Shown here one piece after another: positions 7,395 through 63,200 of a DNA stretch of 64,000 bases. Made by a program: the position numbers and the translations under genes. The notes under the pieces were generated by a model. The model made no database searches. It had not been told where the DNA came from and saw nothing but the letters and a program-made list of their open reading frames with translations. The DNA comes from Hydrolagus colliei (Eukaryota). The stretch covers positions 3,038,001-3,102,000 of the forward strand of contig CM068771.1 of assembly GCA_035084275.1 (NCBI GenBank). Reading direction: 5' to 3'. Every line of letters starts with the position of its first letter. Position 1 is the first letter of the stretch.

Positions 7395-7468
<74 letters not shown>

Positions 7469-9120: not shown

Positions 9121-9149
9121 CTGGGCAAACACGAGACACAGCGGAGAAC

Positions 9150-10822: not shown

Positions 10823-10855
<33 letters not shown>

Positions 10856-10995: not shown

Positions 10996-11035
10996 TATAT
11001 ATATCTATCGTGCTGCGCGAGGCGCGCGCGTGCAC

Positions 11036-23577: not shown

Positions 23578-23995
23578 TGGTCTCTCTCTGGCTCTCTCTC
23601 TGGCTTTCTCTCTGGCTCTCTCTGGCTTTCTCTCTGGCTCTCTCTCGCTCGCTCTCTCTGGCTCTCTCTCTGGCTCTCGCTCTCTCTCTCTGGCTCTCGC
23701 TCTCTCTCTGGCTCTCTCTCGCTCTCTCTGGCTCTCTCTCTGGCTCTCGCTCTCTCTCTGTCTCTCTCTCTCTCTCTGGCTCTCTCTCGCGCTCTCTCTG
23801 GCTCTCTCTCTGGCTCTCTCTCGCTCTCTCTCTGGCTCTCTCTCTGGCTCTCTCTCTGGCTCTCTCCCTGGCTTTCTCTCTGGCTCTCTCTTTGGCTCTT
23901 TCTGGCTCTCTCTCTCTGGCTCTCTCTCTGGCTCTCTCCCTGGGTCTCTCTTTGGCTCTCTCTCGCTCTCTCTCTGGCTCTCTCTCTGGCTCACT
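23578..23995. repeat. (CTCTCTCTGG)n-type minisatellite
   Basis: About 420 bp of tandem 10-12-nt CT-rich units. Confidence 0.95.
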
Positions 23996-33455: not shown

Positions 33456-33548
33456 TTCTTCTATGTATGCGTGTCCGTGTCTTTGTGTGTGTGCGCAAAT
33501 GTGTGTATGTATGTTTCTGTGTTGACCAGTCAGAAATGACCAGCAAAT

Positions 33549-37167: not shown

Positions 37168-37231
37168 CAGGAATACCAATGAATCCCAGCAGAGGATAGA
37201 ACACTTTTATTATTTCTATCAACCCCACCAT
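37168..37231 (-). CDS. GPCR1 exon 1 (MVGLIEIIKVFYPLLGFIGIP)
   Basis: 64 nt, G|GTAAGC donor, in phase with exon 2; supplies the first half of TM1; three homologous copies in the window. Confidence 0.85.
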
Positions 37232-41400: not shown

Positions 41401-43354
41401 AAAATATATGCACGGCTATAGGAAAAGTTCTGGACTTCTTTCAAAGAGCAAGCATGTACATGATGGGCCAAATGTCTTTCTGTTGTACTGCAACATTCTA
41501 GAAAAGATACGAAACATGACTAAATCAGTTTTGAAGTCTCTTCTCCCAAATCAGGTTCCCAAAGCCGGCTATAATTGAAATTATCTTTCGACTTTTGTTC
41601 AGCTGGGACTATCACACCAGTCAAGGCTTTGGCTTTCAGAGTTCACTGGAGATAATTGGAACAAATAATCCTCTCATTATTGTCCCTTGCAGCCCTGAAA
41701 ATGAGCCAAGCTGGCTGTCCGGTCACCTGCATTGCCCAACAAGACTGAGGGACCCACTTGGCTCAGTACTGAAGGGATGTGATATTAAGGAGGTAGAGTA
41801 TTAATTGTTTATTTAATCCACACATAAATCAAAAACCTACATCAGTTCTCTTTCAAATATTAAAAATCTCATAGCATTGAATGTTGCTCTGTTTGATGTC
41901 TAGATGCTTCCTCTCGACATTGTCATCTGCAGACATGAGGTCAACATTCACATGTATGTGGATGATACCGTGCTGTGAATCCATGTCCGCTGATGTTCTT
42001 TCAGCTTCTTTGACAAAGTTTCTGCAGCTGAATGTCAGAAGCCATACTCCTTGGCTGCAGTCAATGTTTTCTTTCCTGTGGGTCTGAAAACCTCAACCTC
42101 CCTGGGCTCCCCCTCAGAATCACCAAACTCAGTTTCAAAGACCAGCTTTCCTTTCTACTCCACATGAATTCACTGAACAAGCCCACTCATTCCACCGACA
42201 TCGCATTGCCCACCTCCATGCCTGCCCCACACCCACAGCAGTCAAAACCCTCATCAATGCGTTTGTCACATTTCAGCTGAACTATTCACCTGCCCTCCTC
42301 GCTGGACTCCCCAGCTCCATCGTTTCTCACCTCGTACTGACTCGGTGTCTGACTGTCAAAAGCTACACGATGCTGCACTAGGTGAAAGAGATTCATAGAG
42401 ATTCATAGCATTTTAAGGCACAAAAGGAGGCCATTCGGCCCATCTGGTCTGTGCCGGCTCTTTGAAATGATCGATTCAATCCCACTGCCCTGCCCACTCC
42501 CCATAGCCTAATAGACCTGTTCTCCCTAAATAAATATCTAATTCCCTTTTAAAAGTTGTTATCGAATCAGCCTCCACCACCTTTTCAGGCAATGCATTCC
42601 AGATTCGAACAACTCGCTGAGTGAAAAAAATTCTCCTCAGCTCCCCTTTACTTCACCTTGAAACTATTTTAAATCTGTGACCACGAGTCACAGATTCGCC
42701 TACGAGTGGAAATAGTTTTTCTCTATTTGCCCCGTCGAAACCCCTCATGATCTTATAAACCTCTATTAGGTCTCCCCTCAATCTTCTCTGCTCCAGAGAG
42801 AATAACCCTAGCCTATCTAGCTTCTCCTCATAGCTGAAGTCCCTCAATCCTGGCACCATCCTAGTAAATCTTCTTTGTACCCTTTCCAATGTCTTCACAT
42901 CCTTTCTGTAGTGTGGTGACCAGAATTGAACACAGTATTCCAGCTGAGGCCTCACCAAAGTTTTATAGAGGTTAGTCAGCACTTCCTAACTTTTGTACTC
43001 TATACCCCTATTTATAAAGCCTAGTATTCCATATGCCTTCTTAACAGCCTTGTCTACCTGTCCTGCCACCTTCAACGAGTCACTAACACAAAACTCCAGG
43101 TCTCTCTGTTCTTTCACACCGTTTAAAATTGTACTATCTAGCCTATATTGCCTCCCTTCATTTCTTATCCCAAAATGCATCACCTCACACTTCTCTGCAT
43201 TAGACTTCATCTGCCATGTGAAACTGCATGAATGCATATTTTGTTGTTGCTGTTGGTTTGTCAGTATGTTTTGAGAACTTAGCATCTGTATTCCTTGGCT
43301 GCAATAAACACCTTCTCCCCTTATGCACTGACCGACTCAAACTATGCAGAGTAA
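38440..43354. other. Segmental duplication block B
   Basis: Mosaic of 23535-24350, 24700-24735 and 28638-32189, plus a private CR1 insertion. Confidence 0.88.
42388..43222 (-). mobile_element. Young CR1 3' segment private to block B
   Basis: About 95% similar by eye to 32620-33450; absent at the homologous site in block A (32050-32065). Confidence 0.92.
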
Positions 43355-43638
43355 ATATTAATCTTTCTTTGTCACAGTTCCCACCCAAAGAATGTTCGCT
43401 TTAGTTTACAGGAATGAATGAATTAGTATTTCTGCTGACTGTGAACAGTCTGTCTCTCCAGGTCTTGTCAATGAAATATACTGGTTGGTCTATTGCCAGC
43501 TGTGCATCGACTAACATGGAGTCCACAACAAATGATGGAATCAATTTAACTAGTCCACTGTAAGGCAAAATAAAGAATAAGCCAGTGCAGATCACATTCC
43601 CAGGGAAATGTATGATTGTATCTGTGTCTTTTCTGCAG

Positions 43639-44543
43639 CGATCTCTTTGACCATTGTGGTCCTGGCCCAGGGAATGGGTGGACTCTCCAAATGTGTAACT
43701 CGATACCTTGTAGCTATGGCTGTTGCTGATCTGCTGGTCGTAGTTTTCGATGTGATCCTGTACGAGACACTTAATATTCACAGTCCTTATTCACCCATAC
43801 ATCAGACAGCCATTTGCCGTCCACATCTGACACTTTGCTTCATTGTTATTGATAGTTCTGTCTGGCTGACCATGGCCTTCACCTTTGACCGTTTCATTGC
43901 CATCTGCTGTCAAAGGCTCAAAACCCAATACTGCACTGAGAGGACAGCGGGCATGGTCATCTGGACAATCTGTGCAGGTTTGTGCTTGGAGAACATCCCC
44001 CTGTATTTCATCTACAAACCACGGCTGGTAGTCAATGGGCAGCCATGGTACTGTTCTGTTAAACCTATTATTTACACCTCTCCTGCCTGGAGAGTATTTG
44101 CCTGGTTGGAAATTTTTGCAAATCCACTGCTTCCCTTCATCCTCATCCTCCTCTTCAACACCTTGACCATCAGGCATGTGCTGGTGGCCAGCAGGGTACG
44201 CCAAGGTCTGCGGGGAGCTGCAAAAGGGAGGGACGAGGAGATGGAGAGTCGGCAGAAATCCATAATCCTGCTGTTTACCATCTCGGGCAGCTTTGTGTTG
44301 CTGTGGCTCACCTACATGGTCACCTACATCTTTGCGAGGGTAACGGAAGCCAAGCACATGCAGTCTGACTACAGCAGCCCGTTCACCAACGCTGAGCTGG
44401 TGGGTTACATGCTGCAGCGTCTGAGCTCCTGCTCCAACACCTTCATCTATGGTGTGACCCAGACCAAATTCAGGCAACAACTCATATCCATCATCACTTA
44501 CCCCATCACTCGCTTATTTGTCCACTCGTATAACACAACTTAG
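43639..44543 (+). CDS. Orphan GPCR2 exon 2; ORF intact but no exon 1 upstream on this strand
   Basis: Same family motifs; TTTTCTGCAG acceptor, phase 1; an in-frame ATG at 43608 reads through the acceptor. Confidence 0.85.
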
Positions 44544-46519
44544 CTTCTGCCTGGTCAACACAGACACTCACACTCATACTCAGACACACACACACAAAGA
44601 CACATGCACACATACACAGACACACAGACACATATATATATATGAAATCTTGTGGAATCGTTCTGTATTCAAGAATTCTCTTCAATCTGTGTTTGGAATT
44701 CCAATTGTGAAAAACAGCTTTATGTCTCCTATGTAGTTGATTGTAATTGTTTTCTTGATATTCTGTTACCTCTGCCTGACTTTATTGAATTCCTCTTACC
44801 TGTATGTAATTAGTTTGAATTATGTGGGAAAAAATTACCTATGAAAAGGACAGATCTCCAAGAAGTTATACAGAAAGTTCTCAAAATATACTGACAAACC
44901 AATAGCAACTAAAAAAATTCATGTGTTGTCGTTCACCGAGTGTAGCATTGTGTAGTTTTTGACAGACGACATTGTGTCCTGCTAAAAAGTGACAAATGCG
45001 TCCATGAGTGTTTTGACTGCTGTGGGTGTGAGATAGGCTTGGAGGTGGGCAATGTGGTGGATGTGGGAAAGCGTGTTCCTGTTCAGGGAATAGATGTCAA
45101 TTGGAAAGGAAAGCTGGTCATTGTAACGGATGCCTAAATTGAGTTTGGTGATTCTCAGGGTGAACCCAGAGAGATTGAGATTTTCAGACCCACAGGAGAA
45201 AAAACACTGAGCGGAGCCAAGGAGTATGGCTTCCATTCTGCCGACATTGAGCTACTGAAAATTTGTCAAAGAAGCTGAAAGAACATCAGCGTACATGGAT
45301 TCACATGTGAATGTTAACCTGATGTCTGCAGATGACACTGTCGAGAGGAAGCATCTAGACATTAAACAGAGCAACATTCAATGCTATGAGCTTTTCAATA
45401 GTTGAAAGAGAACTGATTTTCAATTGATGTGTGGATTAAATAAATATATAATACTCTACCTCCTTGATATCACTGCATCTTGGCCCATCTTGTATATGCT
45501 TGTTCTTTCAATGAAGTCTAGAACTTGTCCTACAGCCCTGCACATTTTTTGTTTTCAAGTCATTAAGTTATTCCTTTCAGTAGCTACTGTCCAATCTGCT
45601 TCCACCACACTTCCAGGGAGTGAGTATCTGATCATAACTAAACACTGGGCAAGAAACAATCCACTTGCCTCCCCTCTGGTTATTTTGCCAATTTAGGAAT
45701 TATGTCAGCACCTTGGAAAGGATGCTAAGAATATTAACCTGAATCATTCTAGGGATCAGGGATTTAAATTGTGCGGAGAGGCTAGATGGGCTGGGATTCT
45801 TTCTCTTAGATCAGTGAAAATTTATTCGAAGTGTTCACAATCCTTGATGGGTTTTCATAAAGTAAACAGGGAGAAACTGTATCCTCTGGTTGTAGACCAT
45901 CACGTCGGAGAAACAGCCTTTCCAAGCCACAGAAGTGGACACAGTACTCCCGCTTTGGACTAACCAGTGGTATGTAAAGATTCAACATAACCTCCATGCT
46001 TTTATACACCATCCCAATATTTACAAAGCCAAGAAGCTCATGTGCTTTTTTCACAGCTTTGTCAAATTATCCAAAGATGTTTAAAAATGTATGCGTGCAT
46101 GAATCCCTGGGTCTCTCTGCTTGGAAAAATAATTCTCCCTTGCCCATTCCACTGTCCTGGAGTCAACTGAAGACCTGCCTGCCTGGCTCTGATAGACCAA
46201 TCTATTATCTCTTCCAACCTTGCCTGACATCCCTAACCTACAAACTGCCTCATTCACCATAAATCCCACTGGTACCCCAGCCTTCTCTGATCCCTCAAGG
46301 CAGAAGAGTGAACTGCCAAACGCCCCTGAAGCAAATCCAAATCAGGAGTCCTTTGGATGATTTGGCTTTATCACACTAAGATCTACTGCTCCGCCTACCT
46401 TCTGCTAAATATTTCTTCTATTCCAGGATAATCTTGGAGGCCAAGAATAACACCAGGCTCCACTTTGCCACCACTAAACACCACATTCATCAACCTGCCC
46501 ATGACCAAACATACGTATA

Positions 46520-47260
46520 TTAGATATTATACGTAAATTTTAAGCAAGCATTTGACAAAGTGCCACATAAAAGGATATTGCAGAAGGTTAAGGCCCATGG
46601 ATTTAATGGGAGCATATTATAATGCATTGAAGAGTGGCTAATGGGTAGAAAACAGAGAGTAGGGGTAAATGGGTCATTCTCAAATTGGCAGGATGTGACA
46701 AAACGATCAGTGCTTCGGCCTCAAATATTTTCAATTTTCATCAATGATCTAGACAAAGACATTGAATGTAGCATGTCTAAATTCGCAATTGACACCAAAC
46801 TGGGTGGGAGAGTAAGCTCTAAGGATGATGCAAAAAGATAGCAATGGGATATAGAAAGGCTAGCGAGTGGGCAAGGTAGTAAACCGTGGTAAACCGAGGT
46901 AGTAAAAATAGAAAAACAGATGATTTTGTAGAAGAGAAGAGGTTAGATAATGTCAGTGTTCAGAGGGATTTGGTGTCCTTGTACACCAGTCGCAAAAAGT
47001 TAGTTTGCCAGAACAGCAAACAACTAAGAAGACAAACATCATGTTAGCGTTCATTGCAAATGTTTAGAGTACAAGAGTAGGGAAGTCTTGCTGCAACTGT
47101 CTAGGTCCTTAATGAGACAAGACCTAGAATGTTGTGTGCAGTTTTGGTCTCCTTATTTAAAAAAAGGACAGACTTGCCTTCGAGCTGCTTCAGCGTAGAT
47201 TCACTGGGTTATTTCATGGGTTGAGGGGACGGACTAACCTACAAGATTGAATAAACTAGG
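46520..47260 (+). mobile_element. Old CR1 RT fragment
   Basis: FDKVPHKR...QRVGVNGSFSNWQDVT...FINDLDKDIECSMSKFA remnant with stops and frameshifts. Confidence 0.8.
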
Positions 47261-48019
47261 GCTGTAGTCGCTTATGTTGATGCTCCGCCCACAGCAGAAA
47301 CGTGTTTCTCAAAGTCACAATCTATGTTCTGTCTGTGTTAGCAGTGTTCCTTCTACCTCTCTATCCTTTGGAATTATCTGCACAACACAACAAATTCTAC
47401 CATGTTATCAAATAGCTTAATGGTAGGAGCATTTGCCTCACAATGGAGAGGATTTGTGATTCATTCTAGACCAGTGTGTGATGTTATGAAATTCCCTTAC
47501 TTCACAAGATTCTCTGTTTACCGAGCATCAAGTAGGAATACTGTTGTTCAGCGATTGGTGGATCGCTTTTCTGGGGATAGCTTTCTCTCAACACCTTGCC
47601 ACTAATTCAATTCACAATTCATTAGTCAATTAGTCAACACCTCTCCTTAGCTCCTTCAAGTCTCACCAGAAGACCTTCCTCTTCAAGTCCCATTGTAACC
47701 CCAAATCTCCACCGTTCCCTCCTCCTTTACATCCCCAACCCCAGCTTGGATCTGAAATAACGTCTGCCAGTACCTGGGACATTCTCCTGACGTGAAAGTT
47801 GCTATATAAGCATAATTGTGATGTCATTGCTGTTTATAGTATTTTTGTTCTGTATGTTCTGTTACTTTTCTCTGTATTTATTGAATTCTTCTATCCTGTA
47901 AGTAAATTGTGTGGATTATGTGCAAAATACTGATTTATATAACAGTGTATGAATAACTCTAGAGACTCCATGCTTTCAGTTATACACAAAGAGTATGAGT
48001 GAATGGATTTTTTCTGCAA

Positions 48020-50760
48020 AGTTTGAGTATAACAGCAACAAAATTATACCTGTATTGGGCCTTTCACATCAGGAGGACATCTCAAGGCACTGGGCAGTCA
48101 CTGTGTCAGACCCAGCTGGGGATGGTGGGGGTGGTGAAGGGAAGTGGGGATTAAGGAGTTGCCGATGGGACCATCGATGGGGAGAGTCTTGAGGCAAGTC
48201 TTGAAGGATGCCAGGGATGGGGCGAGATGGAGGTACTGCAGGATGTACTTCCAGAGGTAGGAGGCAGAGTGGCTAAAGGCTCTCCCACCAATGGTGGGGC
48301 AGATGGGTGGGGGGATGTGGTGCAGGCCAGAGCCAGGGCAGGTTGGTAAGGGGTTAGAAGGTCACGGATGCAGGAGTGCGGGGGCGAGGCTGTGGAGGGA
48401 TTTATATATGAGGACCAGGATCTTGAATTGGATCCTTTGGATGATGGGGAATCAAAGGAGTCAGGCGTGGATGCTGGTGATAGGTTCACGGAGTTTCAAA
48501 AGCAGAGCATTTGCATAGTCAAGCTGGGATGTAATGAAGGCATGAATGAGTAGGTCAGAGTAGAAGGGGAGAAAATCTTCATGACAACCAAGGAGTACAG
48601 CTTCCAATGTCTCATAACAAGCTGACTGATCAACCACAATGGCAACAAAAAACTTGGATTCAGATAGCGTCATTCACATTGGTTAGCGTCCTGTAATGTT
48701 TGACAGTTAGACTCCAAGTGGAGTCCTGTAGCCCAGTGATTAGAGCACTTGCCTTACAAGTGAGAGATGTGGGGGTCAACCCCTGGAAGGGCAAATCGTT
48801 GGACAAGTTTCCTGCCCAAGGAAATAATAAATTGATAATTTGAATCCATGACTATTGATGGGACACCGCTGTGTGAAATTTCGCTGTTGCATTTCACTGA
48901 TGTATGTACAGTCAATTCACTTTACAGTATATTCTGTAAAGAGTTTTGAGATGTCTATAAGATGTGAAAAGCACTATATTGAGTGCAAACATGATTATTA
49001 TTATTATTAAGTCAGTGGAAGTGGAGTATTGATGGAGCTGTGGAGCCCAGCAAGAAGGTCATGTGAATTGTCCAACTGAGAAGTGACAAATGCGACGATG
49101 AGGGTTTTGACTGCTTTGGGTGTGAAGTATGTTTGGACGTGGGCAATGTGATGGATACCAAAGGGAATGGTCCTGTTCGGGGAATGGATCTAATCCAAAA
49201 CTGTTGACAATATTGGCGCAGATTCAGTGATTCTGAGGTTGAGTCCATTGAGGTAGAGTAGTTCCACAGGAAATAAGCCAACGAGTATGGCTTCTGTTTT
49301 GCCAACATTCAGCTGCAGGATGTTTGTCAAACAAGCTGACTGGAGATTAGAGAGTGGGAGTCACAGCAGGCTGTCGTCCACAAACATGTGGAAGTTATTA
49401 ATGTCTATTCCTGTAGCTCGGTGGTTAGAGGCACTAGCCTTACAAATGTGAGACCTGTGTTTCGAATCCAGGCATGGTGAAACACTGGGCAAGTTTCCTT
49501 ACTCTAAGTGACCAGATTTGAACACAGTACTCTCATTGAGGCCTAACCAAATTTTTATAGAGGTTAGTCTTAACATTTTGACTTTTGTACTCTATGCCCC
49601 TATTTATAAAGTCTAGTATCCCACATGCTTTTTTTTTAACAGCCTTGTCTACCTTTCCTGCAACCTTCAAAGATTCACTCACACAAACCCCGAGGTTTCT
49701 CTGTTGCTTCACACCCCTTAAAATTGTACCAACTAGGCTATATTGCCTCCCAAAATGCATCATCTCACATTTCTTTACATTAAATTTCATCTGCCATGTG
49801 TCTACCCATTTTACCATTCTGTCTATATCTTCTGGCAGATGGCTACTATCCTCCTCACAATTTACTATTGTTCCTAACTTTGTGTCATCTGCAAACTTGG
49901 AAATGGTATTCCCTATTCCCAAGTCCAAATACAAGGATGATTATTATTATTATCCTCATATCGGCAGATGATGTCACCGAGTGGAAGAATGTACATATTA
50001 AAAGCAAGGCCGAAGATGGAGCCTTGTAGTACCCCACAAATTACTAGGTGGGTGCTGGTGGAAAAACTATTTGCTGAGATGTATTGTTGAGTAGGAGTCA
50101 AGTGAAGTCCCACTAAGGTGGATGAGGGAGGAGAGACACTAGAAGAGGATGTAATAATAATGGTAATCCTCACATTTGATATAATGCTTTCCATGTCTTC
50201 TGGACAACTCAAAGTTTCATAGAATATATTGTAAAGTGAATTGACTTTACTTATTTTAAAAAGGCAAAATACTGCGTTTGTTGGAAATCTGAAAGAAAAA
50301 CAGAAGTCACTGGGAAAACTCAGCAAGTCAGGCAGTGTCTATGGAGAAGAAAAAGCGAGTCAGTATTTTGGGTCCTTGACCCTTCATCAGAAATTTATTT
50401 TTTTAGTTATTATGTGTGGGTAAAACACGGCAGTCAACTGTCCACATCAGCTTCCCCACAAACAGTCGTGCATTGAAGTGACCAATTTCTTGATTATTTT
50501 TCAAAGGATATTATTAGGTGTGTGTAGTAAGGCAACTTGCCTAAGGTTTCACCATGTGAACACAGGTCACACAGTTGTAAGGCTCTAAGCTGCACATCTC
50601 AGTCATCAACTGTGTGAAACTCAGTGGAGGTCACCAGGAGAATGAGGTGGTAGATTGAGCCCTGATCACAGACGACGGTGCAGAGTAAAAACCAGACATG
50701 AGTAGTTCAAGTAGGGAGTAGAGGAAGAAGTGTGAGCAAAATTGAAATGACAACATTCCA
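48020..50760 (-). mobile_element. Old L2 element fragmented by SINEs and by a CR1 fragment (about 49500-49935)
   Basis: Minus-strand remnants GVLQGSIFG..YILPLGDII, QLNVGKTEAIL and HAFITSQLDYANALL lie in the expected order. Confidence 0.65.
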
Positions 50761-50797
50761 AAACGTTCGCCAGGAAGACCACCACACATAGCATATT

Positions 50798-52228
50798 GAA
50801 AGAATGGTTGCCTCCCAGCTCCGCTCTTTCCTTTCAACTCACTCACTCCTTGAACCCCTCCAATCAGGTTTCCACCCAATTCACAGCACAGAAACTGCCC
50901 TGGTTAAGGTTACAAATGACATCCTAACAGCCTGTGACCAGGGTTCCCTCTGCCTCATCGTCCTCCTTGACCTGTCTGCTGCGATCGACACAGTCGATCA
51001 CACCATCCTCCTCCAACGTTTTTCATCCCACCTCTACCTTCAAGGCACAGTCCTTGACTGGTTCCATTCCTACCTGACCCACCGTTTACACTTTGTTTCT
51101 TCCAACGGTTTTTCCTCAAACCCCCGCAAAGTTTCTTACGGCGTCCCTCAGGGCTCTGTCCTAGGCCCCCTCCTTTTCACCCTTTACACGCTCCCTCTGG
51201 GCGATGTCATCCACAAACATGGGGTAGATTTCCACATGTATGCGGACGACACACAGCTGTACCTTTCTGCCTCATCCTTTAACCCCCAGAGCATCGATGT
51301 TCTGACAGCATGTCTGTCCGACATAGAGTCCTGGACGAGGGACAGCTTCCTGCAATTGAACGTGAGTAAGACCGAGGCCCTCCTGATCAGCTCAAGCCAG
51401 TGCCTCCGCACATCGGGCGCTGCCAGACTCAACATCCAAGGCTGCACTCTCCACCTCACAAAGCCAATCAGGAACCTCGGCATCATGTTCGATCAAAAAC
51501 TCTCCTTCCTCCCCCACATCCATGCCTTGACAGCTTATTTCCACCTGCACAACATTGCCAGGCTCCGCAACTATCTTACCCCCTGCGCTGCCGAAACACT
51601 TGTGCACACATACATCACCTCGAGGCTGGACTATGGAAACTCTCTCCTCGTCGGCCTCCCCAGTTCCTCCATTCACAGGCTGCAGATCATCCAAAACTCT
51701 GCAGCCCGTGTACTATCCCGCACCTGCCTCCGCAACCACATAACTCCCACCCTCGCCCATCTCCATTGGCTCCCCATTCTCCAGAGGATCAAATCCAAGA
51801 TCCTCGTCCTCACCTTCAAGGCCTTACAAGGCCTTGCCCTGCCCTATTTAACCGATCTAGTTTCCCCCTACAAGCCCACCCCGACCCTCCGTTCAACAGT
51901 ACTTGGCCTGCTCCAAGCCCTCCACCCAAACAGCCCCACCATCGGAGGCCGGGCCTTCAGTTTCTCCGCTCCCAACCTATCGAATACCATCGCCCAATCC
52001 CTCCATCTCGTTTCTTCCCTTTCATCTTTCAAGGCCAGTTTGAAGACTTTCCTCATTGACCGTGCCTTTTGTTCCACTCCGAACTTTGTGACCTCCCTTT
52101 CTTGTTTCACCCCTTCCCAAACACTCCCCTCCCAGCTCGGGTCACACGCCTCCTGTGCAGCGCCTTGGGACGTCCTCCCGACGTGAAAGGCGCTCTATAA
52201 ATGTAATTTGTTGTTGTTGTTATTATTA
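50798..52228 (+). mobile_element. 5'-truncated young L2 LINE with an open 460-codon RT frame
   Basis: QSGF...STETAL.KV.NDI, GVPQGSVLGPLLF, MYADDTQLY, TSRLDYGNSLL; ends in the L2 tail with (TTG)n. Confidence 0.95.
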
Positions 52229-53689
52229 CAGATGTTGTTAGATTATCAAGAGGTGAAACAGTACGTAACTAGATTTTTGAATTCATGTGTTTTTAAAATA
52301 AATATGCAATACTCTACCTCCCTGATATTGCAGCCCTTCAGCAATGAGTCAAGTGAGTCTACAGCTCTGTTGGACAATGCAGTTGACAGAACAGCCAGTC
52401 TGGCTCATTTCCAGGACTACAAAACACATTCAGGTGAGGAACTTGTACCTCCAATTTGCTCCAGTATACGTTGGAAGCAAAATATTTGACCGGCAGGAAA
52501 TTTCCAGCTGGATAACGTTCAAACATTACCAGGCAGTAGAGCTACATTCATATGTGTAACATTCAGTCTAGTTTGGGCAACTTAAAGCATGGCAATGGGC
52601 ATGAGATTTCAATGTGATGCATCTGATTAATATTAAGTTGCCTAATGAAACAAGAATGCAAGAAACATCCCCACTTGAGCTCAAATATAAATTTTGGATA
52701 AATTCCCATGGCTTACAGTTTCATAGCAGAAATTTCATGACTTGGTTGAAAGTCTTGTGGAAGTCTGTAAATCCCACTTAGTTAGGTTTCCCATTCGTTA
52801 CAAAATGAAATCCTTGTTTCCTCGTGGCCTGCAGAAGAAAATACATTCATGGGAGACAAAGAATATGGCTATCATTTTGCCTACATTCAGCTGCAGGAAA
52901 TTTTTACTCCTACGGGCCTTGATGTCTGGACAACAAGCTGACCAGACACCAGATCCCATGTGGCAGAGTTGAAGTACAGAGTTTCTGGAAGTAAAATGAA
53001 ATAATAATGTCACTTCAATCCATGGTTGTCTGGGGAACACTGCTGTGCACAATCAGCTGCCATAGTCATGCACAAAATACATGGTCAATTGCAGTAATAT
53101 TCTATGAAGTGATTTTAGGCATCTCAACGATGTGATAAGATGCTACAACAAAGGCAAGATTGATAATTAGAATTATTGTATTGGTCAAATTTAGGACCAC
53201 ACTATGTCATTACCCTGACATGGAATCTGGGACTGCAAAGGTGACCAGGAAGGAGGTGGAAGCTGAGATATTATGACATGTTTCAGAAACAACTTGATCA
53301 TGAGAAAGGCGAGAGAGAGAGCATTTGGATTCTGGAAGCACAAGGATCTGATTCAAACATGAAAGTATAAAAGAAAATTCACATTCCCTCTGAGGAAAGT
53401 GAGTCTGTGATCTTTCAGGCATTTGTCTCTTGGGAAAATTATCAGGGGCTTAGGAATATCCAAACCTAAAGGGTTCCACACATATTGATCACTAACACAA
53501 AGCAGTTCATTTCTATCTAGAGTGGGGTGCATACTCTCTTCCTTGAAACATTCGATTGCGTACCCATTTCTCTGCAGAGTATGATACACATTTTACCATG
53601 AGACAATGTTTAGGGATCCAATAATTTGAATTGGGTTGAGGTGGGGTGGAGTATGATAATTCCTGGAAAAAAACTGGTTGATATTGATA

Positions 53690-53903
53690 TTTCTCTGTCA
53701 CAGTTCCCACACAAATAGAATCGGCTTTAGTTTACAGGAATGAATGACTTAGTAGCTCTATGGACAATGAACAGTTTAGTCAATGAGATATACTGGTTGG
53801 TCTGTTGCCAGCTATGGATTGACTAACTTGGAGTCCACCACATCAGACAGCCATTTGTCGTCTGCACCTGACACTTTGCTTCGTTGTTATTGATAGTTCT
53901 GTC
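53690..53903 (+). pseudogene. GPCR2-type relic: intron end fused to a 63-nt TM3 fragment
   Basis: 53690-53840 matches 43355-43520; 53841-53903 (HQTAICRLHLTLCFVVIDSSV) matches 43800-43862. Confidence 0.8.
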
Positions 53904-54107
53904 AGTTTGAAAAACAACGCATTTTGTGGGGAATGGCGTGAAAGCAGCTGCCTCTACATGTTGTTTTCATGTGAGAAGGTGACTTCCTCCTTCTGCAATC
54001 TACGTCCCAGCGGACCTGAATCACAGCTACAAAAAGGAGTAGACGCAACGATGTAGTTGGGATGTAGATTTCAACCTTCAGCAGAAGGAAGCCAGCACTG
54101 CTTGAGA

Positions 54108-54171
54108 ATGGTGTGGTTGATAGAAATAGCAAAGGTGTTCTATCCTGTGCTGGGATTCATTGGTATTCCTG
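54108..54171 (+). CDS. GPCR3 exon 1 (MVWLIEIAKVFYPVLGFIGIP)
   Basis: 64 nt, G|GTAAGC donor, in phase with exon 2. Confidence 0.85.
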
Positions 54172-56542
54172 GTAAGCCATTCCAAATAACTCACACTCGG
54201 GCAAAGCTGGTTCTCACAGCTGTGACCGTGTACCTGGCAGTGATATATTTTTTACTGGTGGAGAGGAACCAGCCTGACAGAAGTTTTAGTCACACTAAAT
54301 TGCCTGAAATTAACTTACTGCATTTTTGTGGGGCAAATACAATAGTTCACGATAGTGTAACACAAACAGTCCTCAGTTTTGTGACCAAGTAATTTAATGG
54401 CTATTATTATTAATAATAATGTATTATTAAATATTTCCCTGTTATTTTTATTATTCATAATGGTTATTATTAATGTATTATTATATAATAATTATACTAT
54501 GTTATTATTAATAATGCTTGCTTTTGACATAGAAATACTAGGCATCTCAATGTCTTTCACAAAATATACCATAAAGTGAATTGACTTATGAATCATGAAT
54601 ACAATTATGGACATAGCACAGCAGCCAATTGTGCAAAACAGTGCCTCACAAAAAGTTGCAGATTGAACTGACCAATTTATTATTGTTTGCTACGAGGGAT
54701 CATTATCAGACAAGTGAAGCAAGGAAACTTCCCCAAGGTTTTGAGGGCAAGTTATCCACAGAAAAGCAATTTCCGAACAACCGTATTCCTACTTGCTGCT
54801 TGATAAACAGAGAATCGTGTGAAATTAGGAAATTTCATAACATCACACGCTGCTCAGGAATGAACCATAAATCCTCTCCATTGTGAGGCAAATGCTCCAA
54901 CCATTAAGCTACTTGATAACATGGTAGAATTTGTTGTTTGGGGCAGATAAGTCCAAAGGATAGAGAGGCAGAAGGAACACTGCTGACAGAGAGAGAACAT
55001 AGTTTGTGACATTGAGAAGCAGTGTCTGTGCTGTCGGCAGAGCATCAACGTGCCTGGGGTGTGGGTTAAAAATGGGAACATAACTTATGAGGTTGTAGGG
55101 GTCGAAATTGGGTTTTGAAGTGTTGGATGGAGTTTGAAGTTAGAGATGGAATAGATCATGGGATGGGTGATATTTGTTGGGAAACCTGTGTTCTAACAAG
55201 AGGCTTGAAAACCCAAGACCTAATGATCTCAGAGTGGATCAATGGGAGGTGTGTATCCTTGATAGCAGCATTTTTAGATGGAGTTGTCTATTTGGCTCAA
55301 AGATACTGCTACCTGTCAATCAGAAGAGTGTGGATTCACTTTGGATATTTCAACTCAAATTATCTTTTCTGATGCTGGGAGTTGGTGCAGATATGAGTGT
55401 GAGTTATTAATGCTTCAATATGACTGTATCACTGAAGTCTGTTGATCTGATTGTGTGCACAGTAATAATGTCAAAGATATTATTGGTAGTGTACTAGGTT
55501 TGTTGAGGAGGAGAGCAAAGTTGCAGGATGAGCTGACAGGAAATATTAGGTGAGTGGAGCTCCTTCATTTATGAATGGTTTTAGAGTATATCTATATAAA
55601 AATAATCATATTTCAAACTGTACAGTGTAGAATGTGTTGCATTTGCCATCAAAGTATAAGACATCAAATGAAGAACAATATTTTCAGAATGTGGCAAGAT
55701 GCAACTTCTCAGATTCGAAGGGCAAATTTGTAACATTAATGTTTCCGAGAGGATGTGATACATATCAATTTTTTTATTTTTTTTAAGTGTTTAGTGTTGA
55801 AAAACTAAAGTATAAATAATCTATGTCAGGATGCTGCTCTGGTAACAGTTTGACTCTGAGTCAGAAGGTTGTGGTTCCAAACCCACATCAAGACTTCGAA
55901 TCACATTGTCTGAGATGCAACTCCAAAGTAGGCAGTGGCGGTGGAAATTGTTGGACATTGAGTCATTCAGATGAGGGATTATACTAATGTCACGATCTGT
56001 ATCATAAGGTACAGTGCACCTAATAGCAGGATCTGCTATTGTGAAGCGCTCTGAGACGCCATGCGGCGTGGAGGGAGCTATATAAATTGAATTTGTTGTT
56101 GTTTTTGTTTACTGGCAAAGAAATCCTCCAAATAAAATTGATCACTCACTCCATGACTGCTTGTGGGACACTACCCTGAACCGTTGACTATCACATTTCA
56201 CCACCAAAATGCGCATATAAATTACATTACAGTATACCACGTGAACCAATTTGAGACATCTCAATGATGTAAACAGATGACGCAACAAAAGCAAGAATTA
56301 TTATTATTACTGGTTTCATGTAAACGGTTACATGGATTCCTGTTGCTCAATGGTTCATGCACACTCCTCACAACTGAGAGACATGAGTCGATTTCCAGCA
56401 AGAAAAATATTGGGAAGCTTACTTACTCCATATGCCTCTGTTTACCTAGCAGTCAGCAGGATTCTGGTTGTTTGGCTGGACCATGTTTCCAGAATGTAAT
56501 AATTCCTTCAAATGAAATAAAATGATGGTGTTTTTCCTGCAG

Positions 56543-57447
56543 TAATCTCACTGACCATTGTGGTCCTGGCCCAGGGAAAGTGTGGACTCTCCAAATGTGT
56601 CACCCGCTACCTGGTCGCAATGGCTGTTGCTGATCTGCTGGTCATGATTTTTGATGTGATCCTGTTGATGACACTTTTCTTCTGCTTTCCACACTCACCA
56701 ATACACCAAACACCCGTGTGCCGCCTGCACCTAGCAATTCGCTTTATTATCACTGAATCCTCTGTCTGGCTGACCATGGCCTTCACCTTCGACCGTTTCA
56801 TTGCCATCTGCTGCTCAAACCTCAAAACCACATACTGCACTGAGAGGACAGCGGGCCTGGTGATCTGGACAATCTGTGCAGGTTTGTGCTTGGAGAACAT
56901 CCCCCTGTATTTTATCTATGAACCACGGCTGGTAATCGATGGACAGCCCTGGTACTGCACCCACAAACCTATCGTTTACATCTCTCTTGCCTGGAGAACT
57001 TTTGCCTGGTTGGATGTTATTGTAAACCCACTGCTTCCCTTTATCCTCATCCTCCTGTTCAACACACTGACCATCAGGCATGTGCTGGTGGCCAGCAGGG
57101 TACGCCAGGGTCTGCGGGGGGCTGCGAAGGGGAGGGACGAGGAGATGGAGAGTCGGCGGAAATCCATAATCCTGCTGTTTACTATTTCGGGCAGCTTTGT
57201 GTTGCTGTGGCTCACCTACACGGTCACATTCATGTTTGCGATGGTCACAGAGTCAAAGTACCTAGAGTCTGACTACAGCAGCCCGTTCACCATCGCTGAG
57301 CATGTGGGTTACATGCTGCAGCGTCTGAGCTCCTGCTCCAACACCTTCATCTATGGTGTGACCCAGACCAAATTCAGGCAACAGCTCATATCCATCTTCA
57401 CTTACCCCATCACTCGCTTACTGGTCCATTCGCATAACCCCACTTAG
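56543..57447 (+). CDS. Orphan GPCR3 exon 2
   Basis: Intact ORF; 23 nucleotide differences from GPCR1 exon 2 by manual count. Confidence 0.92.
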
Positions 57448-60233
57448 ATTTGCTGGTCATTTCTGCCTGGTCAACACAGAAACATACATACACACATTTG
57501 CGCACACACACAAAGACACGGACACACATACATATGGGATCTTTGTGGAAAGGTCGTTCTGTAGTCAATACTTCTCTTCAATCTGTGTTTGGAATCTCAA
57601 TTGTGAAAAACAACTTTATGGCGCTAATATAGTTTATAGTATTTGCATTCCTTCTATTCTGTTGCCTCTGTCTGTCTTTATTGGTTTCCTCTTACCTCTG
57701 TGTAATCAGTTTGGATTATGTGGGAAAAGCTGATTTGTGGAAGAGTTTGTGAAAAAGACAGATCTTCAAACAGTTAAACACAAAGATTATAAATAAATGG
57801 ATATCCAATTATACTCCAGGTTTTACCTAACTTCACCCACCTCAAATCAATTCAAAATGTTGGATTGCTAAACATTGTCTCATGGTAAGATGTGCATTAT
57901 ACTCTGCAGAGAAATGGGTGAGCAATCAACCGTTTCATGGTAGAGTATGCCTCCATTCTAGATAGAATAAACTTCATTGTGTCAGTGATCAATATGTGTG
58001 GAACTCTTGAGGTTTGGGTATTCCTTAGCACCTGATAGTTTTCCCAACAAGCAAGTGGCTGACAGATCACAGACTCACTGTCATTTTAGACATTCATGTT
58101 TGAATCAGATCCTTGTGCTTCCAGAATCTAAACCCTGCATCTCTCCCTTCTCAGAAACATGCTATAACATCTCAACTTCCACCTTCCTTCCTGGTAACCC
58201 TTGTGGTCTCAGATATCACCTCAGTGTAATGACACAGTTTGGACTTGAATTTGACCAACATAATAATTGTAATGCTCAACCTTGCCTTTCATGTAGCATC
58301 TTATTACATCGTTGAGATGCTCAAAAGCACTTCATAGAATGTTACTGTAATTGACCATATATTTTGTGCATGTCTATGGCAGCCAATTGTGCAGAGCAGT
58401 GTTCCTCATACAATCATTGGATTGAAGTAACCTATTTATTATTATTTTATTTCATTTGATGGAATTATTACCTCTGGAAACATGATGCTGCAATTGCCTA
58501 ACTACCAGAATCGTACTGATTGCTAGGTAAACAGACGCATGTTGAGTAAGTAAGATTGCCCATCGTATTTCCAGCTGGAAATCTAATCCACATTGATCAT
58601 GCAAGGCATGTGCTCAGCACTGAACAACAGGACTCCACATAACCATTCAGATGAAAGCAATAATAATAATAATTCTTGAGTTTGTGGCGCCATCTACTCA
58701 CATTGTTGACATCTCTCAAAGTGATTCACAAGGGATACTGTAATGTAATTTGACTGCACATTTAGTGTGTTGAAATGTGGTAGACAGTGGTGCAAATTTG
58801 TGTCCCATAAACAGTCATGGAGTGAGTGACCAATGTTATTTGGGGGATTTGTTGGCCAGTACACCTCAAGATACAGATCATTAATTTACTTTAATATCTT
58901 GCCTGAAGGACAGAATATCCAACAATCTCCACACCCCACCAGCACTGCCTACACTGGAGTGACATCTCAGCCAACGAGATTCCAATTCTCGATGTGGGCT
59001 CGGAAACACAACCTTCAGAGTCAAACTGTTACCAGAGCAGCATCCTGACATAGATTATTGATAGTTTCATTTTTCAACACTAACTAAATTTTTTTTAGAA
59101 AATCATTCAATAAAGATCACATCCTCTCAGAAGCATTTAAGTTACAAACTTGCACTCCAAAGCTGAGAAGTTGCATCTTGCCATATTGTGAAAATATTGT
59201 TCTTCATTTAATGTCATATTCCATGATGGCATATGCAGGATATTCTACACTGTACAGTGTGAAAAATGTTTATTTTGCTATAGATATCCAATAAAAATTT
59301 GATAAATGAAGGAGGTCCACTGACACAATATTTCCTGTCAGCTAATCCTGCAAACTTGTTCTCCTCCTCAACACAACTAGTACACTACCAATATTATACT
59401 GATTGGCAAACTCACTGTATGTTTCAAGGTGTGCCTTCACACAATCACATCAATAGACTTCAGTTCTACAGTTATGTGGAAGCACTGACACTCACGCTCA
59501 CATCTGCAGCATTTCCCAGTGTCAGCAAAGATAATCAGAGTGGAAATATCCAAAGTTGGGTTTTCTCCCACATTTGCCTGATTGACAGGCGGGAATATGT
59601 CTGTAAGCCAAATAGAGACATCGATCGCAAAATGCTGCTACCACAGACACATACCTCCCTCAGATTATCCAATCTTGGGTTTTGAAGCCTCTTGTTTGAA
59701 CACAGGTTTCCCAACAAACAACCTTTCTACAGATGTCTTTCTCTTAACAAGGGACAAATATCATTTGCATATTAAGTTGAATGCTGCTGTCCTGGTTAGA
59801 CTGTCCTATTGTCATGTAACTCAGTGGTTGGAGCATTTGTCTTTCAAGTTAGAGATATGCATTTGATTCCCAGCAGGGAAAATCCTTTCATGAATTTTCT
59901 CACTCCACATGCCTGCCAGTAATTCCTGAAGAAAAAAAAGTTGGTCATTTTAATCCACAGCTGTTTGTGGGAAACCCAAATTGGATTAATTCAGCACACA
60001 ACAACCCTACACTACACTCGCTACAATAATCCTTGTTCCCCCACCACTATGGTTCATGGCGGGCTCCAATGTCTCTCTATCACATGAAAGGACAGAACTC
60101 ATGATGCTGATTCTCCAATACTGGTGATCAGGCTGGTTGCTCTCCTACAGTAAAAAAAGATATCACTGCCAGGCACATGGTTACAGCTGTGAGACACAGC
60201 TTTGCAGAGTGTGAGTTACTTGGAATGGCTTAC

Positions 60234-60297
60234 CAGGAATACCAATGAATCCCAGCAGAGGATAGAACACCTTTGTTACTTCTATCAACCCCACCAT
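60234..60297 (-). CDS. Orphaned GPCR exon 1 (MVGLIEVTKVFYPLLGFIGIP), probably the displaced first exon of GPCR2
   Basis: Intact ATG, frame and G|GTAAGC donor; its intron runs to 57804 and ends at GPCR3's 3' UTR with no exon 2. Confidence 0.75.
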
Positions 60298-63200
60298 TCT
60301 CAAGCAGTACTGGCTTCCTTCTGCTGAAGGCTGAAATGTATTTCCCAACTACATCACTCCAGAGCTTCCACTCCTTTTTGTAGCTGTGATTCAGGTCCAC
60401 TGGGATGCAGATTGCAGAAGCATGAAGTCACCTTCTCATCTGAAAACAACATCTAGAGGCAGCTGCTTTCACCATCTGCCATTCCCCACCCAATACAATT
60501 TTTTTTTTAAAGAAAAGAAAGGACTACAGCAATAAACAGAGCAAGCGAGATACTGGGGTCCATCTCTGGATGTGTTGAGTTCATGTACAGAGCAGGTAGT
60601 CTCAAATTGCACAGTATGTGGTTAGTTGATTGAAGTATGGCATAGAGTTTTGTGCAGGATCCAGACTGATGAATTGGAAATCAGTATGGAAAGGAATAAT
60701 TATCAGAAGGAATGTTCCTGATCCTCATCTCTCTCATTTGTACATGTTTGCGTGTAGGTGTTTGTGACAAAATCAACTGCTTCTCTATCTGTAACTTGCA
60801 GACCGCTCATGTCTGGTCAGGTTGTTTTTCGGACACGAAGGCGCAGGAGCAGAAATTTCCTGCAGCTGAATGTTGGCTAAATCAAAGCCATGTTCTTTGT
60901 GTCCCATTAACAAATTCTCTCCGCCAGGCAGAATAACAACAGCAAAATTCATTTGTATAACACCTTTCACATCAAGAGGAACTACAACAAAAAATACAGA
61001 ATTGCACTTTCATAGCGCGTTTCGCACCAGTAGGATGTCCCAAGTTTCTGAAATACCAAGCACTGGGTTTCAGTGCTTCATACCCAAACTGGGGTCAGGA
61101 TCGGCGTGGGTTTAGATTAGGAGGGAATAGGTTGTGAAAAACTGAATGGTTGAAAAAGAGGTCCTTGAGCTGATACGTGAAGGATCCCAAAGCCTTTGGA
61201 TCTACTGTAACTCAATGGTGCGAGCTCGTGCCTTACAACCGAGAGACCTGTGTTTGAATCTGGGCAGATCAGTGCAAAACTTTAGGCAAGTTTCATTACT
61301 CCACATGCTTACAGTATTTACTGCAAAGTGCTTTGAGGCGTCGATAAGATGTGGAAATTTCTATATCAAATGCATGGATTATTATTATTATTAAAAGGAG
61401 GCAATGGTGGTGGACTGCTAGATGGAATTTCACATGTTGTGGGCAGATTGGCTGAAGGCTTGCTGTTGGATTGTGTGGCTGTTGGATTTGGGCAAATGTG
61501 GCAGGTCATATCCTGCTGAGCATTGGGAGCGGACAGTTTGGTAGAGTGTAACAAGTCATTTCAAGGGATGGAGAGGAAAGGGAGTTTGGAGATGGTGTGG
61601 TAGCTGGAGAATAGGGATGGGTCCAGGGGAAGCTTTATCAGAATGCTGAAGACAGCTGTATTTAATGGGGTGGGAACAGTGTCAGTGGATAAGGAGAGCT
61701 TGACATCAGTTAGAAGAGAAGCCAGGAGGTGGAGCTTGGAGGTGAGGATAGAGGTGGGGAGATGGACAAGGGAGCAGGCGACAGTCTACGTTTTGATGAT
61801 GATGGAGCTGAGGGAGCAGGGAAAGTTACAGGTGATCAGGTGGTAACGGTGGACAGGGTAAAAGTAGTTTAACATATACCCTCTATTTTAGATTCAGAGT
61901 CTTGGGAAGGTTGATGAACATGGTGTTTAATGGTAGCAAAGTGGAGCCTGGTGTTATGCTTGGCGTCCACGATTATCCTGGATTAGAATAAATATTTGGC
62001 GGAAGTTAGGCGGAGTAGCACAGCTTGTTGTGATGAAGCCAAATCTTCTGACGGACTCCTGATTTAGATGTGGTTCAGGGGCATTCGGCAGCTCACACTT
62101 CTGACTTGAGGGATCAGAGAAGGCTGGTGTACCAGTGGGATTTAAGGTATATGAAGCAGTTTATAGGTTAGGGGTGCCAGGCAAGTTTGGAGGAGATAGT
62201 ACATTGGTCATCTGAAGTCGCCCACGTAGGACCAGATGGGCGGGACTTCAGATGACTACAGGACAGTGGAATGAACAAGAGAGGATTGTTATTTCCAAGC
62301 AGAGAACCAGGGATTGACACGTATACAAATTTTTGAAGGTGGTAGGATAATTTGACAAAGCTGTGAAAGAAGCACATGGGATTCATGGCTTTCTCACTAG
62401 AGGTATAGTGTATAAAAGCATTCATGTTGAATGTTTACAAATCGCTGATTAGTCCTCAGCGGGAGGATTGTGTCCATTTCTAGGCTTGGAAAGGCTGTTT
62501 CTTTAGGCAGGTTGCTCAATAATCAGAGGAACAGTTTCTCCCTATTTACTTTATCAAAACCCAAAGCGCATTTTGAACAGTTCTATTAAATTTTCCCTTA
62601 AATTTCTATGATATTAGGAAAACAATTGCAGACTCTCTCATCTTGCCACGCAATTTGAATCCCTTATCCATAGAATCATTCAGTTGATTATATTTTGCAC
62701 CAACTACAAGGCCCTGACACCATTCCTAAATTGGCAAAATAGCCAGAAGGGAGGCAAGAGGAATTTTCTCTTACATAGAGGTTTGATATGATCTGATATT
62801 CACTGCCTGAAACTGTAGTGGAAGCAGATTGGATAGTAGCTACCAAAAGGAATAAGTTAATGACTTGAAAACAAAGTATATGCATGGCTATCGGACACAT
62901 TCTGGACTTCATTCACAGAGCAAGCATGTACATGTTGGGTGAAATGTCTTCCTTCTGTGCTACAAGATTCCACAAAATGTGCCAAATGTGACTAAACAGT
63001 TTTGTAGCCTCTTCTCCCAAATCATGTCCCCCAAACCAGCTATAATTTAGATTACCTTTCAATTATTTTTCCAGCTCAGAATATCACACGGGCCAAGGGT
63101 TTGGTTTTTGAGAGTTCACTGCAGCTAATTGAAAATAATCCTAGCATAAATATCCCTTACAATACTAAAAATGAGACAAGCTGGCTGTTCTGTGACCTGC

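Follow-up and report, generated by a model that had tools for sequence, protein, structure and literature searches.

The present and ancestral orders of a receptor array in the window (the whole 64,000-nt stretch of DNA that was analyzed) differ by one balanced inversion of 14,450 bp with reciprocal junctions, as supported by alignment of the paralogous units. The inversion parts exon 2 of the receptor gene GPCR2 from its promoter and exon 1, in line with the split gene described in the earlier note on this DNA. The most probable explanation, to which we assign a probability of about 75%, is a real two-break, end-joining inversion that is younger than the duplication of units A and B (~3% divergence) and that left GPCR2 without decay. 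The case is, most probably, a clean but ordinary gene-breaking inversion and involves no new mechanism.

At this locus, two-exon rhodopsin-family receptor genes are arrayed in tandem; they come from a family that is expanded in cartilaginous fishes and has been auto-named "GPR139." The window contains three copies of the first exon (64 nt) and three of the second (905 nt). In minus-strand reading, an array unit consists of a promoter, a 64-nt exon 1, a 2.4- to 2.7-kb intron, a 905-nt exon 2, a 3' UTR, and a 3' flank. Unit A was used as the uninverted reference, with GPCR1 exon 1 at 37168-37231 and exon 2 at 33549-34453, both on the minus strand. GPCR3 lies on the plus strand, with exon 1 at 54108-54171, an intact exon 2 at 56543-57447, and a 3' UTR that runs from 57448 up to the breakpoint at 57804. 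GPCR2 exon 2 (43639-44543) is also on the plus strand and comprises 905 nt including the stop codon; its ORF is intact and encodes a 7tm_1 domain. The orphan exon 1 of GPCR2 is found at 60234-60297 on the minus strand (64 nt, MVGLIEVTKVFYPLLGFIGIP plus 1 nt); from 60297 to 60234 it reads ATG...CCTG/GTAAGC, with a GTAAGC donor in phase 1, and its peptide aligns with the N termini of full-length shark family members. The spliced ORFs of GPCR1, GPCR2, and GPCR3 each encode 322 amino acids, and that of GPCR2 is complete only with the orphan exon. The in-phase splice of this exon to GPCR2 exon 2, proposed earlier from the sequence, was thus reproduced with an intact ORF of the same length as those of GPCR1 and GPCR3. 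All three exon-2 ORFs matched the 7tm_1 profile with 68.8 to 72.8 bits (curated cut-off, 30.5), which places the three products among the rhodopsin-family (class A) G protein-coupled receptors. An ATG101-like copy is present elsewhere in the window.

The best relatives of the window receptors were Callorhinchus milii proteins with 71 to 79% identity, none of them identical, and more than a thousand relatives of the family occur in sharks and chimaeras. The close relatives carry varying names in their source records (AT2-like, GPR15-like, CCR3-like, and galanin-receptor-like). Orthology to GPR139 was rejected, as GPR139 (E = 9.6e-10) was no closer than other class A receptors such as neurotensin receptor 1 (E = 1e-10). 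Exact look-up of the 311-amino-acid ORF of GPCR2 in protein collections returned no identical entry, and exact look-up of ten variants (the three 322-amino-acid proteins, the LINE reverse transcriptase, and exon-2 ORFs started at GTG or ATG) returned no match. A C. milii locus (GCA_018977255.1, MU249860.1) with 78 to 82% nucleotide identity showed the same two-exon structure, with an exon-1-like sequence at 3016-3078 and exon 2 from ~10030; this locus is paralogous and is not the same place. Literature searches on GPR139 in sharks, elephant shark, and cartilaginous fishes found nothing relevant, and those on inversions in C. milii assemblies found nothing on this locus. The receptor family itself, which is large, only remotely GPR139-like, and apparently undescribed, may be the more interesting lead.

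The inverted segment (43355-57804) was delimited by the flip that restores both the alignments across the junctions and a colinear tandem array. Besides the entire GPCR3 gene, it contains exon 2 and the 3' flank of GPCR2, a GPCR2-type relic, and degenerate unit remnants together with a LINE. The left junction at 43354/43355 reads ...GCAGAGTAA/ATATTAATCTTTC, where the acceptor-proximal GPCR2 intron now follows the end of 3'-flank block B (GAGTAA/ATATTAATCT, 43349-43364). The right junction at 57804/57805 reads ...AAATAAATGGATAT/CCAATTATAC, where the end of the GPCR3 3' UTR is joined to the distal GPCR2 intron (AAATGGATAT/CCAATTATAC, 57795-57814), and an AATAAA signal at 57792-57797 lies 7 nt ahead of the break. 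The junction letters quoted in the earlier note agree with the sequence at both places.

On the left side, flank block B (38976-43354, plus strand) ends at the breakpoint and is 96.7% identical to flank block A (28639-32189, plus strand), which continues unbroken into the GPCR1 3' UTR at 32189/32190 and was the template for the restored left junction. Block B carries an inserted LINE 3' fragment at 42389-43220. The last 284 nt of the GPCR2 intron (43355-43638, plus strand), homologous to 53681-53842, are still attached to exon 2, and the acceptor at 43638/43639 reads ttctgcag/CG; the retained 284 nt correct the earlier description. The 3'-flank block of GPCR2 itself (44981-46448, minus strand) is 75 to 79% identical to 30208-31944 and 40540-42277, and it is oriented opposite to flank B as the right arm of a palindrome around GPCR2. 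On the right side, the distal 2,429 nt of the GPCR2 intron (57805-60233, minus strand) lie outside the inversion, with 57815-58453 matching the relic and 58441-59720 matching the GPCR1 intron. The presumed GPCR2 promoter lies in the upstream region at 60298-61311 (minus strand), which is homologous to the sequence upstream of GPCR1 exon 1 (82.7% identity between 36939-38229 and 59998-61311). The relic (52988-53903, plus strand) retains an intron end and 64 bp of exon 2 with ~270 bp deleted, and the sequence at the right junction has its unbroken homologue here. A LINE reverse transcriptase ORF (50804-52186, plus strand; RVT_1, E = 5e-25) lies inside the segment, away from the breakpoints.

In the present order, four alignments were truncated at or near the junctions. 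The alignment of flank B with unit A (32055-32189, 97.8%) ended exactly at 43354, and that of 43355-43530 with 53681-53842 began exactly at 43355. Similarly, the alignment of the GPCR3 3' UTR with the GPCR1 3' UTR (32463-32191, 95.6%) ended at 57801, and that of 57815-58404 with 53667-53035 began at 57815. When 43355-57804 was flipped in silico, the four became two junction-crossing alignments: a single HSP crossed the left junction (32055-32463, 411 bp, 95.6%, 658 bits), and another crossed the right junction (53842-53035, 823 bp, 77.9%, 675 bits). Both HSPs had an E value of 0, thereby excluding chance. The reciprocity of the junctions, suggested earlier by eye, therefore held under formal alignment, with continuity restored at both ends. 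The flipped window was colinear with unit A through units B and C (GPCR2) and the start of unit D, all on the minus strand, which agrees with the tandem array expected after the flip. The proposed unbroken homologue of the right junction was indeed continuous there; however, it is a relic and not a gene. The palindrome of flank copies around GPCR2 (40540-42277/46445-44981) and the inverted repeats (52988-53667/58453-57815, 79% identity) are real, and both are accounted for by the inversion. The polarity of the change is clear: in GPCR1, GPCR3, and a C. milii paralogue alike, exon 1 shares a strand with exon 2 and lies in cis to it.

The present order might also have been built without any inversion, if pieces of unit A and of the GPCR2-type unit were duplicated separately, in direct and in inverted orientation, in a region that clearly underwent several duplications, deletions, and LINE insertions. 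However, two independent duplications would then have to end at one base in unit A (32189/32190) and two more at one intron base (53667-53681 in the relic), and GPCR2, unlike all the relatives examined, would have lacked a cis first exon from the start. We regard such an origin as extremely improbable.

A second alternative is an assembly or scaffolding artefact, in which the genome is un-inverted and a 14.45-kb contig was placed backwards with gap-free joins. The assembly behind the window has gaps, its near-identical paralogous units (95 to 97%) are hard to assemble, and both halves of GPCR2 are perfectly intact. Moreover, ATAT is its own reverse complement, so that a 4-bp end overlap is satisfied in either orientation, and a contig reversed in scaffolding and abutted via this palindrome would look identical. 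However, neither junction has an N or a repeat, and repeat-induced misjoins fall within shared repeats, whereas these joins share just 4 bp. The earlier observation that no N gap lies at either breakpoint was confirmed: the window has five N runs, all within 6393-20117, and none past 20117. The ancestral right-hand site is unique sequence, with a sole relative in the window that is 78% identical. Because this site is unique and the junctions lack N and repeats, repeat-driven misassembly is unlikely; for one contig to carry two precise, reciprocal, and gap-free misjoins, chimeric reads would be required at both ends. We consider an assembly flip unlikely and infer that the inversion is biological. 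If the segment was flipped in assembly, the value of the finding would lie in the assembly correction, and the annotation should list GPCR2 as a third intact gene.

For the preferred reading of a real inversion, we propose that two double-strand breaks occurred in the sequenced haplotype, the first in the GPCR2 intron, 284 nt short of the exon-2 acceptor, and the second at the end of the GPCR3 3' UTR, and that the ends were rejoined in the wrong orientation, inverting 14,450 bp. The rejoining was probably by nonhomologous or microhomology-mediated end joining, with a gain of no more than 2 bp and with 2 to 4 bp of AT/ATAT at the joins. The inversion is balanced, and hardly any sequence came or went at the breakpoints: the restored left (flank/UTR) site has 2 extra bases relative to two paralogues, and the relic aligns without interruption across the restored right site. 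The claimed ATAT microhomology was borne out in part. At the intron site the motif is native (GATATT in the paralogue), but at the flank/UTR site the paralogues (GT and AT) back 2 bp only. The probability of a chance 4-bp match, by arithmetic from base composition, is ~0.004 to 0.007.

Other sources of the breaks were also considered. A search for inverted-repeat pairs whose arms lie at 43355 and 57804, respectively, found none, and the sequences flanking the two junctions are unrelated to each other. The absence of long, similar inverted repeats at the breakpoints excludes nonallelic homologous recombination (NAHR) of the F8 type and leaves end joining as the likely repair pathway. LINE-mediated breakage was rejected, as 135 bp separate the end of the flank-B LINE fragment from the breakpoint and the reverse transcriptase ORF is internal to the segment. 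An extra 905-bp piece of the GPCR2 intron was considered as a transposon and rejected, since it has just one further copy in the window; that copy runs on into 64 bp of exon-2 sequence and is thus a paralogous relic.

The same features bear on the polymorphic on/off switch suggested in the earlier note, taken here as a segment that flips to and fro, reversibly or in a programmed way, to turn GPCR2 on and off. Its appeal is only that both halves of the gene are intact and that a flip would restore GPCR2. The breakpoints have no inverted-repeat pair and share only the 4 bp of ATAT, and the ORFs scanned include no recombinase, the sole enzyme ORF among them inside the segment being the LINE reverse transcriptase; nothing seen here could thus flip the segment back. 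No programmed inversion switch of this kind is known for a vertebrate receptor gene. The suggestion was dropped as scarcely credible.

The inversion is younger than the A/B duplication, because the 95 to 97% tract in common with unit A crosses the restored left junction unbroken. The description of the event as recent is therefore reasonable in relative terms, and GPCR2 showed no excess of damaging changes: deviations at conserved family columns numbered 9 of 102 in GPCR2 and 8 of 102 in both GPCR1 and GPCR3. Both halves of GPCR2, exon 1 and exon 2, were undamaged, as had been noted. An unconstrained 900-nt ORF has a 50% chance of survival only to ~0.4 to 0.9% divergence. The dN/dS ratio was ~0.3 in all receptor pairs; over the long GPCR2 branch, such a ratio cannot resolve the brief interval after the inversion.

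GPCR2 exon 2 now lies on the strand opposite to its own promoter and exon 1 and 15.7 kb from them, so that the normal mRNA cannot form. Loss of GPCR2 expression is the expected outcome, and GPCR2 is most likely a young null allele. GPCR3 is intact with its orientation reversed, and foreign sequence begins 7 nt past its AATAAA signal.

GPCR2 might still be used if the inversion is older or fixed. A new start in flank B would then permit translation from an in-frame ATG at 43608 in the GPCR2 intron, which opens an unspliced ORF of 311 amino acids with a shortened first transmembrane helix (TM1). The database models of two C. milii paralogues (P0004 and P0007) begin at the equivalent intronic ATG, and an intact ORF without decay is also expected of a used gene, as is a dN/dS of ~0.3. 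However, the C. milii starts look like annotation shortcuts: the full-length shark members and the three window genes have an N terminus and first half of TM1 encoded by exon 1. The plus strand upstream of 43608 has no exon-1-like sequence or known promoter, and the dN/dS value carries no weight over the short postinversion time. Continued use of GPCR2 is thus quite improbable.

If the inversion is real, it would represent a base-precise, end-joining micro-inversion that retires one receptor of a tandem array, caught before decay, and it could serve as a population marker and a natural knockout. A more specific proposal, which we hold only tentatively and consider rather doubtful, is that the inversion is a structural polymorphism still segregating in a holocephalan population, as a natural GPCR2 null allele in a receptor family that would be specific to cartilaginous fishes. 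In that case, the orphaned promoter and exon 1 (60.2 to 61.3 kb, minus strand) would fire convergently into GPCR3, and the inversion might also damp GPCR3 by antisense transcription.

The locus can be compared with several known systems. Local orientation errors in draft assemblies are normally bounded by N gaps or repeats. The present case resembles them as a reversed piece of ~10 to 20 kb in a repeat-rich region of a gapped assembly; however, neither N gaps nor repeats bound 43355-57804. The array also resembles the birth-and-death arrays of olfactory, vomeronasal, and taste receptors in its tandem young paralogues (dS, 0.05 to 0.35), relics, LINE insertions, and one freshly disabled member. 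In contrast to those arrays, it belongs to a divergent class A group that is expanded in cartilaginous fishes and bears the name GPR139 only by automatic naming, and its disabling lesion is a structural flip and not a point mutation. In hemophilia A, the F8 intron-1 (int1h) and intron-22 inversions arise recurrently by NAHR between inverted repeats of ~1 kb or 9.5 kb. As in GPCR2, an intronic breakpoint parts the promoter and first exon(s) from an otherwise intact gene, giving a null allele. The GPCR2 breakpoints, however, lie in nonhomologous sequence with 2 to 4 bp shared, which points to a one-off event, unlike the recurrent F8 inversions. Finally, inversions formed by nonhomologous or microhomology-mediated end joining, as in Drosophila and among human polymorphic inversions, carry short microhomology or small staggered-break duplications at their junctions. 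Here, paralogue support at the flank/UTR site extends to only 2 of the 4 bp, and sequence alone cannot separate the pathways. The GPCR2 inversion resembles the end-joining class in being balanced, in its junctions precise to 0 to 2 bp with 2 to 4 bp of AT/ATAT at both joins, and in its repeat-free breakpoints.

The sequence of the window is eukaryotic, and a repeated unit is present from 28.6 kb to its right end. Three long ORFs, those of GPCR1 (33549-34454, minus strand), GPCR2 (43608-44543, plus strand) and GPCR3 (56560-57447, plus strand), matched the 7tm_1 (rhodopsin-family) profile with 68.8 to 72.8 bits (cutoff, 30.5 bits). Their nearest database relatives were Callorhinchus milii proteins (71 to 79% identity), followed by hundreds of shark and ray proteins of about 50% identity automatically named "probable GPR139"; the search returned 1,496 matches at E ≤ 0.001, each shark genome contributing dozens. 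The three receptors are part of a very large cartilaginous-fish receptor family; their own proteins were absent from the protein collections searched, and our literature searches found no paper on this expansion in cartilaginous fishes. Among solved structures, GPR139 (E = 9.6e-10) was matched only remotely, on a par with neurotensin receptor 1 (NTSR1; E = 1e-10), and therefore "GPR139" is the nearest label and not an indication of orthology. The first-helix (TM1) asparagine is normally conserved in class A receptors and was kept in at least 90% of 47 relatives, mostly shark proteins (ANLVTIV). GPCR1 to GPCR3 have isoleucine at this position (GIP-V/A-ISLTIVV) and the C. milii paralogues alanine or isoleucine; judged from these sequences, the replacement looks like a holocephalan-specific change.

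The coding sequence of each receptor gene is divided between two exons. The first, exon 1, measures 64 nt (ATG...CCTG/GTAAGC, phase 1) and occurs in exactly three copies in the window, for GPCR1 (37231..37168, minus strand), for GPCR3 (54108..54171, plus strand) and as an orphan (60297..60234, minus strand), which are 88 to 92% identical across about 180 bp. Exon 2 is located at 33549-34453 in GPCR1 (start 34453, minus strand), 43639-44543 in GPCR2 (start 43639, plus strand) and 56543-57447 in GPCR3 (start 56543, plus strand), preceded in all three genes by a pyrimidine tract and CAG. In silico splicing gave an intact 322-aa ORF for every gene, for GPCR2 only with the orphan exon, as the earlier note had proposed. 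The exon 1 peptide MVGLIEVTKVFYPLLGFIGIP aligned readily with the N termini of full-length 324-aa shark members, e.g., MGQPVIIQIENIYYPILAIVGVP, and in a paralogous C. milii locus exon 2 is preceded, at a distance of 7 kb, by an exon-1-like sequence in the same strand. These results indicate that exon 1 is genuine and that genes of this family normally have both exons in cis on one strand.

In the assembled sequence, the exons of GPCR2 are separated by an inverted arrangement of 43355-57804. The junction letters quoted previously were the same on rereading, and formal alignment bore out the reciprocity of the junctions. In the present order, the alignment of the 3' flank block of unit B with unit A (GPCR1 and its flank) stops at 43354, and that of the following sequence with 53681 onward starts at 43355; likewise, the alignment of the GPCR3 and GPCR1 3' UTRs stops at 57801, and that with 53667 and below starts at 57815. 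After scripted reversal of 43355-57804, a single 411-bp alignment to 32055-32463 (95.6%) spanned the left junction and a single 823-bp alignment to 53842-53035 (77.9%) spanned the right one. The flipped window was colinear with unit A, with all receptors in minus-strand tandem as had been claimed: unit B (flank B and GPCR3), unit remnants, unit C (GPCR2 flank, UTR and exon 2, intron, exon 1 and upstream region) and the flank of unit D. The restored GPCR2 intron is 2,713 nt long, versus 2,714 nt in GPCR1 and 2,371 nt in GPCR3. These results confirm the inverted arrangement and exclude chance.

The restored order must be ancestral, because GPCR2 needs exon 1 in cis, like all its relatives, and because unit A and a relic at 52988-53903 each keep one ancestral join unbroken. 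The relic (plus strand) immediately precedes the GPCR3 promoter region; 52988-53842 matches the end of the GPCR2 intron, and 53840-53903 matches 64 bp within GPCR2 exon 2 (43799-43862, 92%), with about 270 bp deleted between them. It is therefore the relic of a GPCR2-type unit, which rules out a transposon, and it points to an older deletion in which most of another receptor gene was lost. Origin of the present order by separate duplications was rejected, since it would require independent events to end at an identical base twice, once in each of two pairs.

We estimate the probability of a real inversion at roughly 0.75. Reversal of a contig during assembly is an unlikely source of the same arrangement: the assembly has gaps, the region is rich in paralogues, and a flipped contig would be equally compatible with a palindromic 4-bp overlap and with perfectly intact gene halves, but two reciprocal, gap-free misjoins would be required. 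Neither junction has N, the N runs being confined to 6393-20117, and the sequence at the right-hand ancestral site is unique, which means that confusion between repeats cannot account for a break there.

Several of the long, imperfect, TG/CA-rich and similar short tandem repeat arrays (10367-10996, 11816-12246, 16889-17159, 20146-20719 and 23577-23996) adjoin N runs; the arrays yield spurious Cys/Val- or His/Thr-rich ORFs. Exons for immunoglobulin C1-set (E = 6e-14) and V-set (E = 7e-13) domains at 8663-9151 and about 11050-11330 (both minus strand) resemble pieces of one Ig-superfamily gene, tapasin-like or MHC-region-like, that is broken by N runs. An intronless copy of ATG101 (autophagy-related protein 101; 20734-21413, plus strand), in a GC-rich stretch adjoining an N run, is spread over three reading frames, which match Pfam profile positions 1-43, 45-115 and 118-157, respectively; either the copy is a processed pseudogene that has acquired two frameshifts, or sequencing errors account for the frame changes.

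Regarding the joining of the breaks, no inverted-repeat pair with one arm at each breakpoint was found, and the sequences flanking the two junctions are unrelated to each other. Homologous recombination between inverted repeats and any way of flipping back are thus ruled out, which leaves the suggested on/off switch without support. The only letters common to both breakpoints are ATAT, which equals its own reverse complement, so each breakpoint can be placed only to within 4 bp; given the base composition, four letters would match by chance with a probability of about 0.004 to 0.007. The proposed ATAT microhomology held at the intron site, where ATAT is native (the relic reads GATATT), but less well at the flank/UTR site, where two paralogues read GAGTAA-GT-CC and GAAAAA-AT-CC and the restored site reads GAGTAA-ATAT-CC. 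This site may already have had ATAT, making the event perfectly conservative, or only AT may have been common, the other 2 bp then coming from fill-in at a staggered break. Both courses carry the signature of end joining (NHEJ/MMEJ).

A 95 to 97% tract common to units A and B crosses the restored left junction from flank through UTR to CDS; therefore, the inversion is younger than that A/B duplication or conversion. Flank divergence between these units is about 3.3%, and dS between GPCR1 and GPCR3 is 0.05. GPCR2 deviates at 9 of the 102 columns conserved in the 47 relatives (8 each in GPCR1 and GPCR3), I272N being its only specific deviation, and dN/dS is about 0.3 in every pair. An unconstrained ORF copy has a 50% probability of a stop or frameshift by 0.4 to 0.9% divergence and 95% by 1.8 to 3.9%. 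As read from its coding sequence, GPCR2 shows no decay; together with the tract, this makes the description "recent" fair in relative terms. Two LINE 3'-end fragments (32464-33461, plus strand; 42389-43220, minus strand) in units A and B are 95% identical, share the 3' end, differ in 5' truncation point and flank opposite sides of the same 409-bp segment in opposite orientation. Probably, members of a young LINE family inserted separately into the two units once these had been duplicated; less probably, a second small rearrangement accounts for the arrangement.

GPCR2 exon 2 now lies 15.7 kb from its promoter and exon 1, on the opposite strand, and we infer that normal GPCR2 mRNA cannot be made. 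An in-frame ATG at 43608, within the final 31 nt of the intron (43608-43638; MYDCICVFSA...), keeps a 311-aa ORF open; in the receptor predicted from it the first helix would be shortened, and expression would require a new promoter. Database models of C. milii paralogues use the same kind of intronic start (P0004, MFVVFPAA...; P0007, MYDYVCDFPAA...) and probably lack the true exon 1. GPCR3 is intact. The sole canonical AATAAA of its 3' UTR (57792-57797) is followed after 7 nt by the right breakpoint, which leaves GPCR3 with foreign sequence in its cleavage region; GPCR1 has CATAAA at the paralogous site, and the hexamer may therefore not be the true polyadenylation signal. The orphaned putative GPCR2 promoter would now be directed into the GPCR3 3' end. 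Altogether, the structural reading in the earlier note, an inversion splitting GPCR2, was right. The event belongs to a known kind, the micro-inversion that splits a gene; in this lineage-specific receptor array it is well documented and resolved to the base.
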